A DNA stretch of 64,000 nucleotides from Blastocystis sp. Blastoise (lineage: Eukaryota; Protista; Bigyra: Opalinata), in NCBI GenBank assembly GCA_039096225.1, contig JBBPEB010000023.1, forward strand, positions 186,001-250,000, written 5' to 3'. The notes under the pieces are model-generated. The model was not told the DNA's origin, made no database searches, and was given only the letters and a program-made list of their open reading frames with translations. Positions 27,205 to 32,906 of the stretch are shown here, piece after piece (within the stretch, counting starts at the first letter, position 1; the number at the start of each line of letters is the position of its first letter). The translations under genes and the position numbers were made by a program.

Positions 27205-30200
27205 ATGTTGACTTGTGTATTTAAAAGTAGTTCCTTAACTAAAAGTGTTATGAGAAGTTTAAGAAGTATACCCAATCATTAATATATGAATATTCGTTTT
27301 TTTCTAATTATATAGATTCTTCTCGATCTTTACATATCAAGATCAATGGTAAATCATTTGAAGCAAGTGAGAATAAAACTATTCTTGATGTTTGTAAAGA
27401 AAATGGAATTGATATTCCTTCATTGTGTTCCCATTCTCAAGCTAAACCTATGGGTATTCTTTTTATTTTTATGTTAGATTTATTTATCTATATTATATAA
27501 ATATTAGGTAAATGTAATTTGGGTAAAGTAGATGTTAGTGGGTATGTTTTTATTATTATGAATAAATATATATATATTTTAGACAAGTTGAACTTCAATC
27601 ATCCTGTTCTACTCAAGTTCAAGAAGGAATGGAAATTTGGACAACGACTCCTAGAGTTGTAGAAAATCAACTTAAAGAAATTAAAAATTTATATTCTTCA
27701 GTTCCTAATAAGTATATTTTTATTTATTTTTATTTATTATTTATTTTATATTTATTTATTTAATATTTATTTATTTAATATTTATTTATTTATTTATTTT
27801 ATTATTTAATTATTTTATATTTATATTTTTATATCTATTTATTATATTATCTATCATTCTTAAAACAAATATAGACAAGCTTTTGAAACAAAAACAATGA
27901 AAGATTTATTAAAATATACAACTGAACATAGTATTTATTGTCTATTTCTTTACGTATTCTTACATACTATTATATATACATACATATTCTTATATTCCTT
28001 CTAGATAATAGTATATCTGTTGATTATATGAAATGTATTAGTTGCGACCGATGTGTTACTGCTTGTTCTGATGTTATTGTATATATTTAAATATTATATT
28101 CAATAACTATATATTCTGTTTATTAATATATTTGTTCATTATATTCAAAACCTATTTATTATGATTGTATTCATCTTACTATTCCATGTCTATTCATGAT
28201 TCCATAATATATACTTATTTCTTCTTTATATATATATATATAGGGTTGTAATGTATTTGCGTCATCCTCTAATCAAGAAGGTTTCCCTGTTGGATACACA
28301 AATGGTATCTCTCTTTCGACTTCTCCTTGTCTCCATTGTGGTCAATGCTCATTAAGCTGTCCTACTGGTGCTCTATCAATTGTGTCTCATGCGTCACGTG
28401 TGGCACAAGCTATTCACGCCAAAAAGACAATTGTCATGATTGTTGATCCAAGTATTCAACAATCCATTGGGTCTCTTGAAACACAATGTAACGGTACGTC
28501 ACAACAACAATTACAATCATTCATTGGAAAAACAAAAGTATATTTATAACTATATATATTTATTATTATTATTATTATTATTATTATTATTATTATTATT
28601 ATATATCTTCTAGTCTATGGGAATTCAGTATGTATTTGATGGTGCCATAGGTAATGACTTATATATACAAAAAGTGTCATCACTTCTCCTTCAGAAGATC
28701 AATGGAGATTATAAATCACCCACTCCCGCGGGAAAGAAACCTCTTCCTATTTTTACATCTTCATGCCCTGCTACTAATGAATTGTTTAAACAAGTATATT
28801 TATAATAGTTATGTAATATTATTTTATTTGATTATTATGTGTTATTGATGAATATTATTATTCTTTTATTCTATATATTGAATATTATTATTCTTTTATT
28901 CTATATTATTGAATATTATTATTTTATTGAATATTATTATTTATTTAACTTAATTATACATTTAACTCTATATATATATATAATTAGTTATATCCACAAA
29001 TGCTTCCTGCTTTCTCTCCATTCCAATGTCCCCCAGAAATGTTAAGTTCCGTTATAAAGGGAGCATGGGCTAAGGAACACAATCTCGATCCTAAAGATAT
29101 TTATATTGTTGATTTTACCAGTTGTGTTGCCGCTAAGAATAGTGTTTTACAAACAGGGTATTTTGTTAATCTTCTTTTATTTCTTATTTCTTCTTCTTCT
29201 TTAGTAGTTTTGATGCCGTTCTTATTCCCACGGAAATGAAAGAATTAGAAACTCTTCTTCTCTCCAACTCCAAAGGATTATCAGCCACATTTGATGCTCC
29301 TTATAATAATGTATATATATATTATTATTTATCTATTATTATTTATCTCTCCTTCTTCACCTATCTTTAGAGTACTTCTAGTGCCTCTCTCTCTACGTAT
29401 ACTGGCGGTTTACTAGAAGCTATTCTCAGAGAAACTACTGCTCTTATTAATCCTACTTCTACATCTACTCCCGCGGTTATTGAAGTATTTTATACTATTT
29501 ATCTTAAGCTCTTTTTTTTGTAATATTTCTTTATTATTTGTTATTATTTTAATCTCTTTTAATTAAAATATTCTTCTTCTAAATTCTAATATATACATAT
29601 CTATTTTTTTCAATACTATAGAATTGTCGTAATATCAAGACATCCCAGATGTTTGTGCATAAGATAAAGGATTCGAAAGGAAAAGAACACAAATTAAGAT
29701 GTGTCGCTGTGAATAGTAAGTATATTCAACCATTTATGGAGAAAGTAATAAAAGGAAAGGTAATCTATTTATATTGAATTCTATATATTCTATTATATTA
29801 TACTATAATTAAATGAATAAATCTTAATTAGTATTCTCTATATCCTCACTGAATAACTATATATATAGGTTCAATATGATTTGGTAGAATTATATGCTTG
29901 TCCTGAAGGTTGTATTGGAAGCGCGGGCTTTGGTGATTTGGCGGGATCTGAAGAATGTTCTAAACGTCGTGAATTTGCTATTAAAGAATCGAATAATAAA
30001 ATGTATAAAAGTATTCAACAATCTGATATTGTTAAAGTATATATAATACTTTATATAATACTATATATAATATCTCATATATAATAATATATAATATTCT
30101 TCGTAGTCTCTCTCTTCTCTTCCTTTGAGTGCCTCTCTTTCTGTTTCTATTTCTCAAGAGACTCAACAGTTTATCGATTATATACATAAACAGGATGATT

Positions 30201-32906
30201 TCATTAATGCCGCCACAAATACCGCCGATCCTAATGATATCCTCATTCTGTACGGAACACAAGGAGGGACGTCTCTTGCCGCTGCTCAACAGATAGAAAC
30301 ACAATTAAAGGAGAACCATCTGAAAGCACGTGTGAAGTGTATGGAAGATATTCAAGTAAAAGAATTAAATAAAGAAAAGCGTATTATTTTAGTATGTTGT
30401 ACGTATGGTCAAGGAGATTTCCCTAAGACAGCGAAACAATTCTGGAACCAATTAAATGATAAGAATCTCTCTTCTACATTCTTTAAGAACATCGAGTATG
30501 GTGTATTTGGTCTCGGATCCTCTGCTTATAAGTATATTTATTTATTTATTTATTTATTTATTTATTTATTTATTTATTTATTTATTTATTTATTTATTTA
30601 TTTATTTATTATCTATATGTTTATTGAGTTTTACATTTATTTATATATATATAATAGGAAATTTAATGAAGCTGGTCGTTTATTGGATGATCGCATGTGC
30701 GCTTTGGGCGGGAAACGTCTTCTTCCACGTGCTGCTGCTGATGAGACGAAGCCCGGTAAATATAGTGGCGCGCTTGAGGATTGGTTCCCTCAATATATGA
30801 AGAGTATTAACAAAGAAATTGCTCTTTATATGAATATTACCCCTGCATATAAGATTGCTAGAGGAATGGAGGGAAAATACTTAAATATACTACCACCCAA
30901 TGGATTCAAATATGTGTATATATATATATTAGTTTATTATTTTTTTTTTTTTTATTTTTTATTATTTTGATATACATAATTATTACAGTCTTATAACTTT
31001 ATAACTCTTTTTCTCTTTATTATCACTATTATATATATATAGTCCATGTACTAAGATAACATCAGAGACTGCTCCTGGATATGACCGAGAGATTCGTTTA
31101 TTTAACTTCGATATTCGAGGCACAGGTCTTAGTTATAATACGGGTGATCATGCTGCTATTTATCCTCGTAATTCCCCGCGATTAATTGAACAAATATTAG
31201 ATAAGAGAGAAATAGAAGGAGATAAAGAGGTGTATATACAACCTCAAGAACAAGGGTATGTACTTATATTCCATGAATTATTATACATGTTACTGTTGAT
31301 TTTATATTCTTTACTATATGTATAATATATATTATGATATATAGAAAATCGATGAAATGGCCTGAAACTCTTCCAGTAAGTGAGTTATTTGAACAGTATT
31401 TCGATATGAATACTGCAGTCACCAAGCAGTTCCTTCGTCAAATCTATAACTATGTAGAAAAAGAAGAAGAAAAGAAGATGATCAATTATATTGTTACTAA
31501 CAAAGAAGCTCTCACCCAATATACACAGGTATATATTATTATGTTTATTATGTTTATTATGTTTATTATGTTTAATATATTTAATATTATTATTATTATT
31601 ATTATTATTATTATTATTATTATTATTATTATTATTATTATTATTATTATTATTATTATTATTATTATTATTATTATTATTATTATTATGTTTATCTAGT
31701 CTACTACCATAGGAGATTGTTTACAATCCTTCTCATCCCTCCATATCCCTCTCGATCTCCTCATCTCTATACTCCCTCATATTCAACCTCGTCTATACTC
31801 TATCGCTTCCTCCTCTCTCATGCACCCTCAAGGTATATATATATTATCTTTATTACTTTATTTATATATACATATATTATCTTTATGTTATTTATCTATA
31901 CATATTATCTTTATTACTTTATTTATATATACATATATTATCTTTATTATGTTATTTATATAATTATTGTTATTATTTTATTATGCTTCTCCTTATTATT
32001 CTATAAACTATCTTCTATTCCACTTCGAAAACATTTATATTTATATTATTTTGTAGATGTACAATTAGCTATTGGTTTGAATTTCTTTAAACAGCCCGCT
32101 AAACCTACTTTTGGCGCTAATGGTGAATATATAGCTCCAGCTCCTAATGCTAAGCCATCTCAACATAATGGTCTTACAACTGGATATTTATGGGACTTAG
32201 ATGCTAAGAATAGTATATATATATATATATATTATTGAATTAAATTATTGACTTTCTTATTTCTATTTTATATTCTATAGTTCCTAAAGTAGCTATGTCT
32301 ATTCATAAGGGTATTCTATACCTTCCTAAAGATCCTATGACTCCTACTATTTATATGTCATTAGGAACGGGAGTAGCACCCTTCCGCGCCTTCCTCCAAG
32401 AGCGGGAAGAAATGGCCAATAGAAACATTAAGATGGGACCCTGTACTTATTATTATGGATGCAGATATGAAGATAAAGATTTTGTTTTTGGAGATTATGC
32501 TAAAGTATATATATATATACTATAGTATATCTATATATTCTTCTTCTTTATATATATCATCTATAATAATATAAACTATATATATTAATAATTTTCTAAA
32601 ATAATATAAACTATGTATATATAGTCTCTTGTTGAACGTGGTATTATTGATAAATTAGAATGTGCCTTTAGTCGTCCCAATCACTATCATATAGACCAGG
32701 TTATGCGGGAAAGACCGGAATATGCTTTTAACGCTGCAAATCACCCTAATGTACATAGTTATTATTGTGGTATTAGTCGAGGTGTTCCAGAAAGTTTAAT
32801 TGCTGCTTTAGGAGATATATATGAAGAAAAGAGTACTGTAACTGATGAAGAAAAACAAAAGAAAAGAGAAGAATTACAACAGAATTTCCATGAAGAATGC
32901 TTCTAA
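27205..32906 (+). CDS. FeFe-hydrogenase-fold protein (2Fe-2S-like + 2x4Fe-4S + degenerate H-domain) fused to flavodoxin and FAD/NADPH reductase (CysJ/CPR-like), with a presequence-like N-terminus
   Basis: TILDVCKENGIDIPSLC, KCISCDRCVTAC and CLHCGQCSLSCPTGAL (Fe-S). LPIFTSSCP, TGGLLEAILR and ELYACPEGC (H-domain). LYGTQGGTS, TYGQGDFP and FGLGSSAY (flavodoxin). PRLYSIASS, GTGVAPFRAF, YYGCR, AFSR, YYCG and terminal ECF* (reductase). All introns GT-AG and in frame. Confidence 0.93.

Follow-up and report, generated by a model that had tools for sequence, protein, structure and literature searches.

The window analysed here is a stretch of 64,000 nucleotides from the tortoise isolate Blastocystis sp. 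Blastoise (GenBank assembly GCA_039096225.1, contig JBBPEB010000023.1, positions 186,001 to 250,000, forward strand). Positions given without a contig name are those of the window. On its plus strand, at 27205-32906, lies a gene for a protein in which a degenerate [FeFe]-hydrogenase domain (H-domain) is joined to an intact diflavin NADPH reductase. With a probability of roughly two in three, this protein arose long ago within Blastocystis as a paralogue of the CysJ-fused [FeFe]-hydrogenases, has a non-catalytic H-domain, and transfers electrons between NADPH and Fe-S centres in the mitochondrion-related organelle. An earlier interpretation made from the letters of the stretch alone (the sequence-only reading) had proposed a degenerate hydrogenase scaffold fused to an intact reductase, and the alignments reported here agree with it; judged by the residues lost, the H-domain is almost certainly non-catalytic. 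The order of Pfam domains, determined per exon and on the public protein P0283 described below, is Fer2_4, two Fer4, Fe_hyd_lg_C, Flavodoxin_1, FAD_binding_1, and NAD_binding_1.

Degenerate catalytic site of the H-domain

The H-domain comprises amino acids 216-555 and is encoded by exons 7-13 (28397-30036, plus strand). The Pfam profile Fe_hyd_lg_C matches the domain over its full length but weakly, with 114 bits for the whole protein and about 28 bits for individual exons, and there is no match to Fe_hyd_SSU. In contrast, canonical relatives score 278-311 bits and possess the SSU segment. The domain was compared with 140 homologous H-domains, 59 of which are fused to CysJ, and was aligned exon by exon to hydrogenases with solved structures from the PDB. 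Residues are numbered according to the hydrogenase CpI of Clostridium pasteurianum.

The four cysteines that ligate the cubane of the H-cluster, C300, C355, C499, and C503 in the established numbering, are all present in the window protein and in its orthologue from the pig gut. However, 15 positions conserved in 97-100% of the 140 H-domains are all changed: A230, R234, E278, E279, E282, R286, C299, W303, S323, M353, P354, K358, F417, M497, and G506. Among these, K358, P354, F417, A230, S323, and W303 are invariant in 140/140 homologues. All contacts of the diiron subcluster are replaced. The motif APS (A230-S232) is replaced by DPS and is followed by the substitution of R234 by glutamine (28445-28453), both changes being common to the pig-gut orthologue. 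The sequence YIQKV stands in place of TIMEE (28662-28676), which removes the proton-path residues E279 and E282. The motif TSCCP reads TSSCP (28755-28769), with the relay Cys299 replaced by serine and the ligand Cys300 kept, and one residue further TSCCPG has become TSSCPA. The motif MPCTAKK reads TSCVAAK (29117-29137), with the changes M353T, P354S, and K358A around the retained Cys355. In the last of the motifs, MACPGGC reads YACPEGC (29893-29913), in which M497 is replaced by a tyrosine common to the pig-gut orthologue, Cys499 and Cys503 are kept, and the following GGGQP is changed to SAGFG, so that MACPxGCxGGGGQP as a whole reads YACPEGCIGSAGFG. Where canonical enzymes carry the H-cluster signatures TSCCPxW, MPCxxKxxE, and ExMxCxxGCxxGGGQP, the window protein has TSSCPAT, TSCVAAKNS, and ELYACPEGCIGSAGFG.

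The proton path C299-E279-S319-E282(-R286), the roles of whose residues including E279 and E282 have been described previously (PMC6226526), reads S, V, S, L, K in the window protein, with S319 alone retained. The CpI mutants C299S, C299A, E279A, and E279Q have less than 1% of activity (PMC6226526). Other retained residues of the H-domain are P231, P324, K359, G421/G422, and E425. The retention of the four cubane cysteines and the changes in the catalytic motifs had been listed in the sequence-only reading and hold in the structure-based and 140-domain alignments, which add P354S, F417S, W303T, R234Q, and the missing Fe_hyd_SSU match. In a test of columns conserved in at least 90% of 48 full-length fusions, the H-domain retains 35 of the 77 invariant columns, whereas family members used as controls never fall below 82% and have a median of 99%.

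The H-domain was also modelled with AlphaFold (AF2) from an alignment with 40 homologues, giving a predicted local distance difference test score of 82 and a predicted template modelling (TM) score of 0.85. Foldseek comparison of the model resulted in TM scores of 0.75-0.78 to CpI, HydABC, and DdH. The predicted structure thus keeps the hydrogenase fold; because the input alignment was dominated by canonical relatives, the model shows only that the sequence is compatible with this fold. A look-alike search of the ESM Atlas returned nothing past 'hydrogenase'.

Among the bacterial 'group A6' hydrogenases (P0232-P0266), 29 of the 140 aligned H-domains have the sequence TSCSPGW, with serine at the position of the cubane ligand Cys300 and Cys299 kept.

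Diflavin reductase half and Fe-S front end

The reductase half retains 38 of the 39 family-invariant columns, and its FMN, FAD, and NADPH motif stretches match the family consensus, in agreement with the earlier claim that the flavodoxin and FNR motifs are intact. The flavodoxin (FMN) domain is encoded by exons 14-15 (30230-30850, plus strand) and has a Flavodoxin_1 score of 107 bits and 12/12 invariant columns. The connecting and FAD-binding domain with the motif RLYSIASS follows in exons 15-19 (30851-32212, plus strand; FAD_binding_1, 131 bits; 14/15 columns). The NADPH-binding domain, matched by NAD_binding_1, is encoded by exons 20-21 (32281-32906, plus strand; 12/12 columns) and contains GTGVAPF, CG, and a C-terminal ECF before the stop codon TAA at 32904-32906. 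The protein thus has the motifs RxYS, GTGxAP, and CG and the C-terminal aromatic residue of diflavin NADPH reductases of the CysJ/CPR/Tah18 type.

The front end of the protein begins with a 2Fe-2S domain (Fer2_4) encoded by exons 2-4 (27316-27711, plus strand). Its third ligand cysteine, at position 72, is present in 43/43 relatives and in the pig-gut orthologue, and is replaced by glycine in the window protein (codon 27522-27524). The sequence-only reading was correct that the domain is one cysteine short; the comparison places this loss in the tortoise lineage specifically, outside the ancestral change. The domain is followed by two ferredoxin-type [4Fe-4S] motifs (28005-28396, plus strand; Pfam Fer4) with the pattern CxxCxxCxxxC. 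All 8/8 cysteines are present, and the region retains 13 of the 15 invariant columns.

Descent from CysJ-fused hydrogenases

Alignment to P0012, P0016, and P0035 showed that the window protein and canonical HydA-CysJ fusions are collinear over their entire length. In the maximum-likelihood tree of the reductase half, its sister is P0012 (support 94/81), followed by the anaerobic stramenopile Cantina marsupialis (97/95) and P0035 (99/98), apart from pyruvate:NADP+ oxidoreductase (PNO) and CPR. The end branch of the reductase half has a length of 1.12, compared with a median of 0.52. In the H-domain tree calculated without the pig-gut sequence, the window protein has an end branch of 7.29 (median 0.34) and an unsettled placement; a grouping with the H-domains of Cantina, P0012, and Blastocystis is not rejected by an approximately unbiased test of the same data (p 0.21). 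When the pig-gut sequence is included, it pairs with the window protein (100/100) on a stem of 4.91 with tips of 1.72 and 1.55, and the pair falls within a group formed by the PFO-HydA protein of the same genome, the HydA-flavodoxin (HydA-Fld) proteins of human subtypes, P0012, and Cantina (88/93). Because its branch is long, the H-domain is placed less certainly than the CysJ half. The alignments and trees put the origin of both halves in the CysJ-fused [FeFe]-hydrogenase family.

Orthology with the human-subtype HydA-Fld proteins was rejected, as the sister of their H-domain is that of PFO-HydA in the Blastoise genome. Descent from Nar1 was also rejected: a separate Nar1 is encoded on contig C4, and comparison of the H-domain with that locus showed no significant similarity (E-value 0.25). 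The likeness to a Nar1 plus Tah18-like module, put forward in the sequence-only reading, is consequently an analogy only.

Pig-gut orthologue and selection on the H-domain

Two look-ups led to an orthologue. A fragment of 145 amino acids, 58% identical to the product of exon 14, pointed to short gut-metagenome contigs, and an exact look-up of one exon product identified pig-gut metagenome contigs of up to 13.5 kb with a GC content of 41-45%. The orthologue at 6409-10581 of contig L023 has 1174 amino acids and 19 introns of 31-44 nt, and is found also on contigs L024-L032. It is a locally built spliced model without public annotation. A search with P0283 found no full-length orthologue in the annotated protein collection, and pattern scans of JGI metagenomes found no match for exon 12 and only an unrelated CysJ for exon 16.

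Eighteen of the 20 window introns, including the first, have the same position and phase in the pig-gut gene. The nineteenth differs by an alignment shift, and the twentieth is an in-frame insert of 33 nt left in the pig-gut model. The orthologue resembles the window gene in its introns, its presequence, and its degenerate site, indicating that the loss of the catalytic site predates the split of the tortoise and pig lineages. Together with the long shared stem, the shared residues indicate that the site was dismantled in a burst before that split. At the positions with introns in both genes, the pig-gut introns measure 31-44 nt and those of the tortoise gene 41-224 nt, which provides a clean view of intron shrinkage within Blastocystis.

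The derived residue is the same in the window and pig-gut proteins at A230 (D), R234 (Q), E279 (V), R286 (K), M353 (T), and M497 (Y). In contrast, the two differ at C299 (S in the window protein, N in the pig-gut protein), W303 (T/A), P354 (S/N), K358 (A/L), F417 (S/A), and Q325 (P/T). Since the orthologues carry different residues at C299, K358, P354, F417, and Q325, these positions fit sites that have lost their role.

Identity between the orthologues and the number of nonsynonymous substitutions per site (dN) vary along the chain. Only these two measures were used and no dN/dS value is given, because the synonymous distance is saturated. The presequence is 46% identical (dN not used), the 2Fe-2S domain 57% (dN 0.40), the Fer4 region 46% (0.52), the H-domain 40% (0.62), the linker 20% (0.97), the flavodoxin domain 60% (0.34), the FAD domain 58% (0.36), and the NADPH domain 71% (0.24). 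Neutral decay of the H-domain, which the sequence-only reading had named as an outcome that would speak against repurposing, is refuted: at about 40% identity, the pig-gut H-domain keeps the cubane cysteines and the derived D, Q, V, T, and Y at CpI positions 230, 234, 279, 353, and 497, and the linker is at 20%. The substitution pattern indicates that since the split the H-domain has been under relaxed purifying selection, its rate of change exceeding that of a true hydrogenase and remaining far below that of sequence without constraint.

Gene structure and N-terminus

The window is AT-rich eukaryotic DNA with a GC content of 16-35%. Rebuilt by coordinates, the gene consists of 21 exons with a coding sequence of 3537 nt and a product of 1178 amino acids without internal stops. 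All 20 introns are of the GT..AG type, mainly GTATAT..TAG, with sizes of 41-224 nt, and the gene is free of lesions, as noted before from the letters alone. A genome search found a single copy in the Blastoise assembly, which has 34 contigs and a total length of 33.3 Mb. The exons are located on the plus strand at 27205-27265, 27316-27453, 27508-27541, 27583-27711, 27875-27930, 28005-28078, 28244-28537, 28614-28793, 28988-29157, 29205-29310, and 29371-29484 (exons 1-11), and at 29622-29759, 29869-30036, 30107-30531, 30658-30915, 31043-31255, 31345-31528, 31700-31832, 32057-32212, 32281-32504, and 32625-32906 (exons 12-21). Microsatellite repeats make up most of introns 7, 14, and 17, namely (TTA)n, (TTTA)n, and (ATT)n, at 28560-28605, 30535-30610, and 31585-31689.

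The NCBI entry for the gene is the hypothetical protein WA158_007800 (KAK8798716.1, P0283 in our numbering) of 1298 amino acids. It is identical to the rebuilt product from model residue 22 to the end, and the public model therefore has the same exons from exon 2 onward. Residues 1-141 of P0283 derive from an upstream gene for a small membrane protein (exons from 25832 to 26840). The public model leaves that gene at a GTATGT donor two codons before its TAA stop and enters the acceptor at 27316, which is the one used in the rebuilt model, whereas the exon at 27205-27265 is left out of the annotation. The N-terminus of P0283 is read as an artefact of merging two genes, and the start of the public model looks wrong. 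The upstream gene is the second of a tandem pair for a small multi-pass membrane protein (24285-24944 and 25832-26844), and is the one merged into WA158_007800.

Exon 1 (27205-27265, plus strand) encodes a presequence-like peptide of 20 residues, as read from the sequence, which is rich in serine and threonine and contains five lysines or arginines and no acidic residue. It is followed in exon 2 by the motif RSL, and similar RSF motifs are found in the presequences of the PFOs of the same genome and of HydA-Fld from subtype ST4. The pig-gut orthologue begins with a basic and hydroxylated peptide, ML.C, resembling the start of the window protein, and has a phase-1 intron at the matching place. 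The similar start and the first intron of the same place and phase support exon 1 and its interpretation as a presequence. The mitochondrial-type presequence proposed in the sequence-only reading is thus likely.

The genome paper describes three tortoise isolates with genomes of 26-33.3 Mb, a GC content of 21-23%, and long introns, annotated under the guidance of introns supported by RNA sequencing (RNA-seq); it does not mention hydrogen or the organelle (PMC12129017). A polyA gut metatranscriptome contains 32% of the sampled words of the stretch, which is suggestive only.

Further downstream in the window, at 49897-54702, are two long intron-free open reading frames of 511 and 1033 amino acids for repeat proteins rich in threonine and serine, the second with a C-terminal transmembrane anchor. 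They may encode surface proteins.

Other hydrogenase-related genes and maturases

A search of the genome for the hydrogenase family found three loci: the window gene, a Nar1-type gene on contig C4, and a canonical H-domain on contig C14. A search for a canonical HydA had been proposed together with the sequence-only reading, and the C14 locus answers it. At C14:934180-939903, a complete PFO is followed on the same strand by two Fer4 motifs and a canonical H-domain with intact TSCCPGW, MPCTAKK, and MACPGGCINGGGQP. The NCBI model of this locus is one PFO-HydA fusion of 1690 amino acids with a mitochondrial-type presequence (P0226, KAK8811497.1, WA158_003231). In this model, PFO is spliced to HydA from a GTATAT donor that lies four codons ahead of a stop, and the fusion is thus known from annotation pending RNA confirmation. 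A literature search found no paper describing a PFO-HydA fusion. In the tree, the H-domain of PFO-HydA is sister to those of the HydA-flavodoxin proteins from human subtypes (100/99).

On the minus strand at C14:933440-933760, head to head with this gene, is another PFO paralogue, which also has a presequence. The Nar1/NARFL-type gene at C4:384182-387024, with the usual N-terminal cysteine motif and a GCLNGGGQ end, encodes the cytosolic hydrogenase-like protein of the genome. An annotated PNO of 1822 amino acids (P0398) is also encoded in the genome. A stop-free open frame of 1690 amino acids on the minus strand at C3:1272540-1274306 is 29% identical to the CysJ half and may be a reductase part of the PNO type.

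No match to the maturases HydE, HydF, and HydG was found in the genome with the profiles TIGR03956, TIGR03918, TIGR03955, HydF_dimer, HydF_tetramer, and BATS, in searches that are weak on intron-split genes. The best TIGR03918 match, a HydF candidate on contig C31, is MnmE. Five radical-SAM loci were considered as HydE or HydG and are of the activase-like, TYW1, CDKAL1, MiaB, and LipA types instead. In Blastocystis ST1, HydE is present, and HydF and HydG are absent (PMC5608401).

Proposed function and alternatives

The H-domain is read as a cubane-only module because K358, P354, F417, A230, S323, and W303 were lost together, the orthologues differ at several of these positions, and HydF and HydG were not detected. 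The descent, the intact gene, the degenerate site, the conserved reductase and orthologue, the selection pattern, and the presequence-like start are shown by the data. In contrast, we infer that the diiron subcluster is unbound and that the cubane and ferredoxin-type sites are occupied by clusters, and the same applies to the activity, the partner, the location, and the direction in which electrons would flow. The redox chain that is left would consist of the NADPH site, FAD, FMN, the former H-cluster [4Fe-4S] cubane, and the two ferredoxin-type [4Fe-4S] clusters, with the 2Fe-2S site added in the pig-gut lineage. The most likely job of the protein would be to carry electrons one at a time between the pool of NADPH and a partner with Fe-S clusters, for example ferredoxin or another acceptor, inside the mitochondrion-related organelle. 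The window protein would neither make nor consume H2. It may serve as a wire or as a sensor.

Several points weigh against the interpretation as an electron-transfer protein. We know of no biochemistry on the window protein or on any CysJ-fused hydrogenase. Expression is suggested by the RNA-seq-guided public annotation and the metatranscriptome. The loss of one 2Fe-2S ligand has shortened the proposed redox wire in the tortoise lineage. The H-domain evolves faster than the canonical one, with 40% identity between the orthologues compared with 66% between the canonical H-domains of tortoise PFO-HydA and ST4 HydA-Fld across a comparable split. The absence of maturases is a weak argument, because the genome encodes the canonical PFO-HydA and also seems to be without HydF and HydG. 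Furthermore, the diiron site is still bound by sensory hydrogenases of groups C and D, in which the proton path is lost and M353 and M497 are replaced by Ser, Thr, Gly, or Leu (PMC8163306), so that the changes in the proton path and at M353 and M497 alone are not decisive against the cofactor.

The last point bears on the possibility that the protein is still an unusual hydrogenase, a slow or sensory binder of H2 like group C/D HydS, which holds the diiron cofactor in a reshaped pocket and couples NADPH to H2 or senses H2. The cubane cysteines, P231, S319, P324, K359, G421/G422, and E425 are retained, the fold is predicted to be kept, and the domain is under purifying selection. In addition, M353T mirrors the Ser/Thr of group D, and the entire proton path is missing from active HydS enzymes (PMC8163306). 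However, the residues invariant in 140/140 homologues (K358, P354, F417, A230, S323, and W303) are replaced, the orthologues diverge at C299, K358, P354, F417, and Q325 (S/N, A/L, S/N, S/A, and P/T), and the maturase searches, weak as they are on intron-split genes, found no HydF or HydG, which makes this explanation improbable. It is a little less improbable, although still unlikely, that the H-domain is a dead spacer, the fold of which merely holds together a protein that works as a diflavin reductase, perhaps with the ferredoxin-type clusters. The H-domain end branch, about 20 times the family median, the lost Fe_hyd_SSU match, the Pfam score of 114 bits against about 290, and the identity of 40% against 66% would be expected of such a spacer, but the four cubane cysteines and several derived residues are common to two deep lineages and no change breaks the frame or deletes a domain. 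Moreover, identity in the H-domain is double that in the true linker (40% compared with 20%; dN 0.62 compared with 0.97), and the AF2 model of the domain is confident. That the gene results from faulty annotation or assembly, or that it became a pseudogene recently, is hardly credible: although the N-terminus of the public model looks wrong, the 21 exons contain no lesion, the RNA-seq-guided public annotation has the same exons from exon 2 onward (PMC12129017), and a full-length orthologue occurs on many independent pig-gut contigs.

A wider scenario, which we regard as possible but tentative, is that the NADPH-linked electron-transfer protein represents a second and independent conversion of an [FeFe]-hydrogenase into a non-hydrogenase in eukaryotes, after Nar1. 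An ancestral NADPH-dependent hydrogenase of Blastocystis would have been duplicated and its jobs divided. One copy would have gone on with H2 chemistry but shed the FAD and NADPH domains, giving rise to HydA-Fld in human subtypes and to PFO-HydA in tortoise strains. The other would have kept the reductase, and its H-domain would have become a cubane-only relay or docking module that links the NADPH pool of the organelle to ferredoxin-dependent enzymes or senses O2 or redox state. If true, this scenario could account for the NADP-linked activities of the organelles of Blastocystis and for the lack of success in measuring hydrogenase in them.

The hydrogenases of Blastocystis have long been a puzzle: they are targeted to the organelle, H2 production has not been measured, and neither HydF nor HydG is present.

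CysJ-fused hydrogenases are common in anaerobic protists and none has been characterised. The gene described here is a natural experiment in which a reductase and an Fe-S wire are under selection and the catalytic site was taken apart earlier than the deepest split sampled in the genus. The protein is an expressible candidate for studies of the role of CysJ without H2 chemistry, of a cubane-only H-domain as a relay, and of the route from an enzyme to a pseudo-enzyme. The analysis also corrects the public gene model and indicates that the genus has three kinds of hydrogenase-derived genes.

Comparison with known systems

The sensory hydrogenases of groups C and D, such as TmHydS and TamHydS, resemble the window protein in the lost C299/E279/E282 path and in the replacement of M353 and M497; serine or threonine at M353 is typical of group D (PMC8163306). 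They differ in being bacterial, in having a C-terminal four-cysteine cluster with or without PAS, and in still binding the diiron cofactor. In the window protein K358, P354, F417, and A230 are replaced as well, K358 by alanine, and the C-terminus is CysJ, with neither the Cx2Cx4Cx16C pattern nor a PAS domain.

Nar1/NARFL is alike in its hydrogenase fold, retained cubane cysteines, and lost diiron site, and shares a pathway with the diflavin NADPH reductase Tah18/NDOR1. However, it is of separate descent, cytosolic, without the 2Fe-2S and Fer4 front end, and not fused to the reductase. PNO and other CysJ/CPR fusions likewise combine an Fe-S module with a flavodoxin-FAD-NADPH cassette, but the CysJ half of the window protein lies outside the PNO clade.

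The Blastocystis HydA-flavodoxin 'atypical hydrogenases' (ST1 AV274_1483 and AV274_6580; ST4 XP_014527296) come from the same genus. Like the window protein, they have a mitochondrial-type presequence, a 2Fe-2S and Fer4 N-terminus, and a flavodoxin after the H-domain. Unlike the window protein, they have all catalytic motifs intact and end without FAD and NADPH domains, and their H-domain is orthologous to that of PFO-HydA and not to that of the window gene. Production of H2 by these proteins has been doubted (PMC2428068, PMC5608401).

The closest system is the family of CysJ-fused [FeFe]-hydrogenases, which share the domain order, length, and C-terminal ECF of the window protein. The family includes Fe-hydrogenase 2 of Stygiella and members from Paratrimastix, Pelomyxa, Carpediemonas, Trichomonas, Tritrichomonas, Histomonas, Pygsuia, Mastigella, Barthelona, Cantina, and the diatoms Nitzschia and Amphora. 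NAD(P)H-dependent formation of H2 has been suggested for HydA-CysJ fusions (PMC4989108, PMC10703272), and a cytosolic location has been predicted for those known so far (PMC4989108). In contrast, the window protein has a presequence-like start. Its CysJ half nests inside the clade and its H-domain is placed beside the stramenopile members. The motifs TSCCP, MPCxxKK, and MxCxxGCxxGGGQP and the Fe_hyd_SSU tail are kept in 59/59 fused relatives, and the window protein has none of them.

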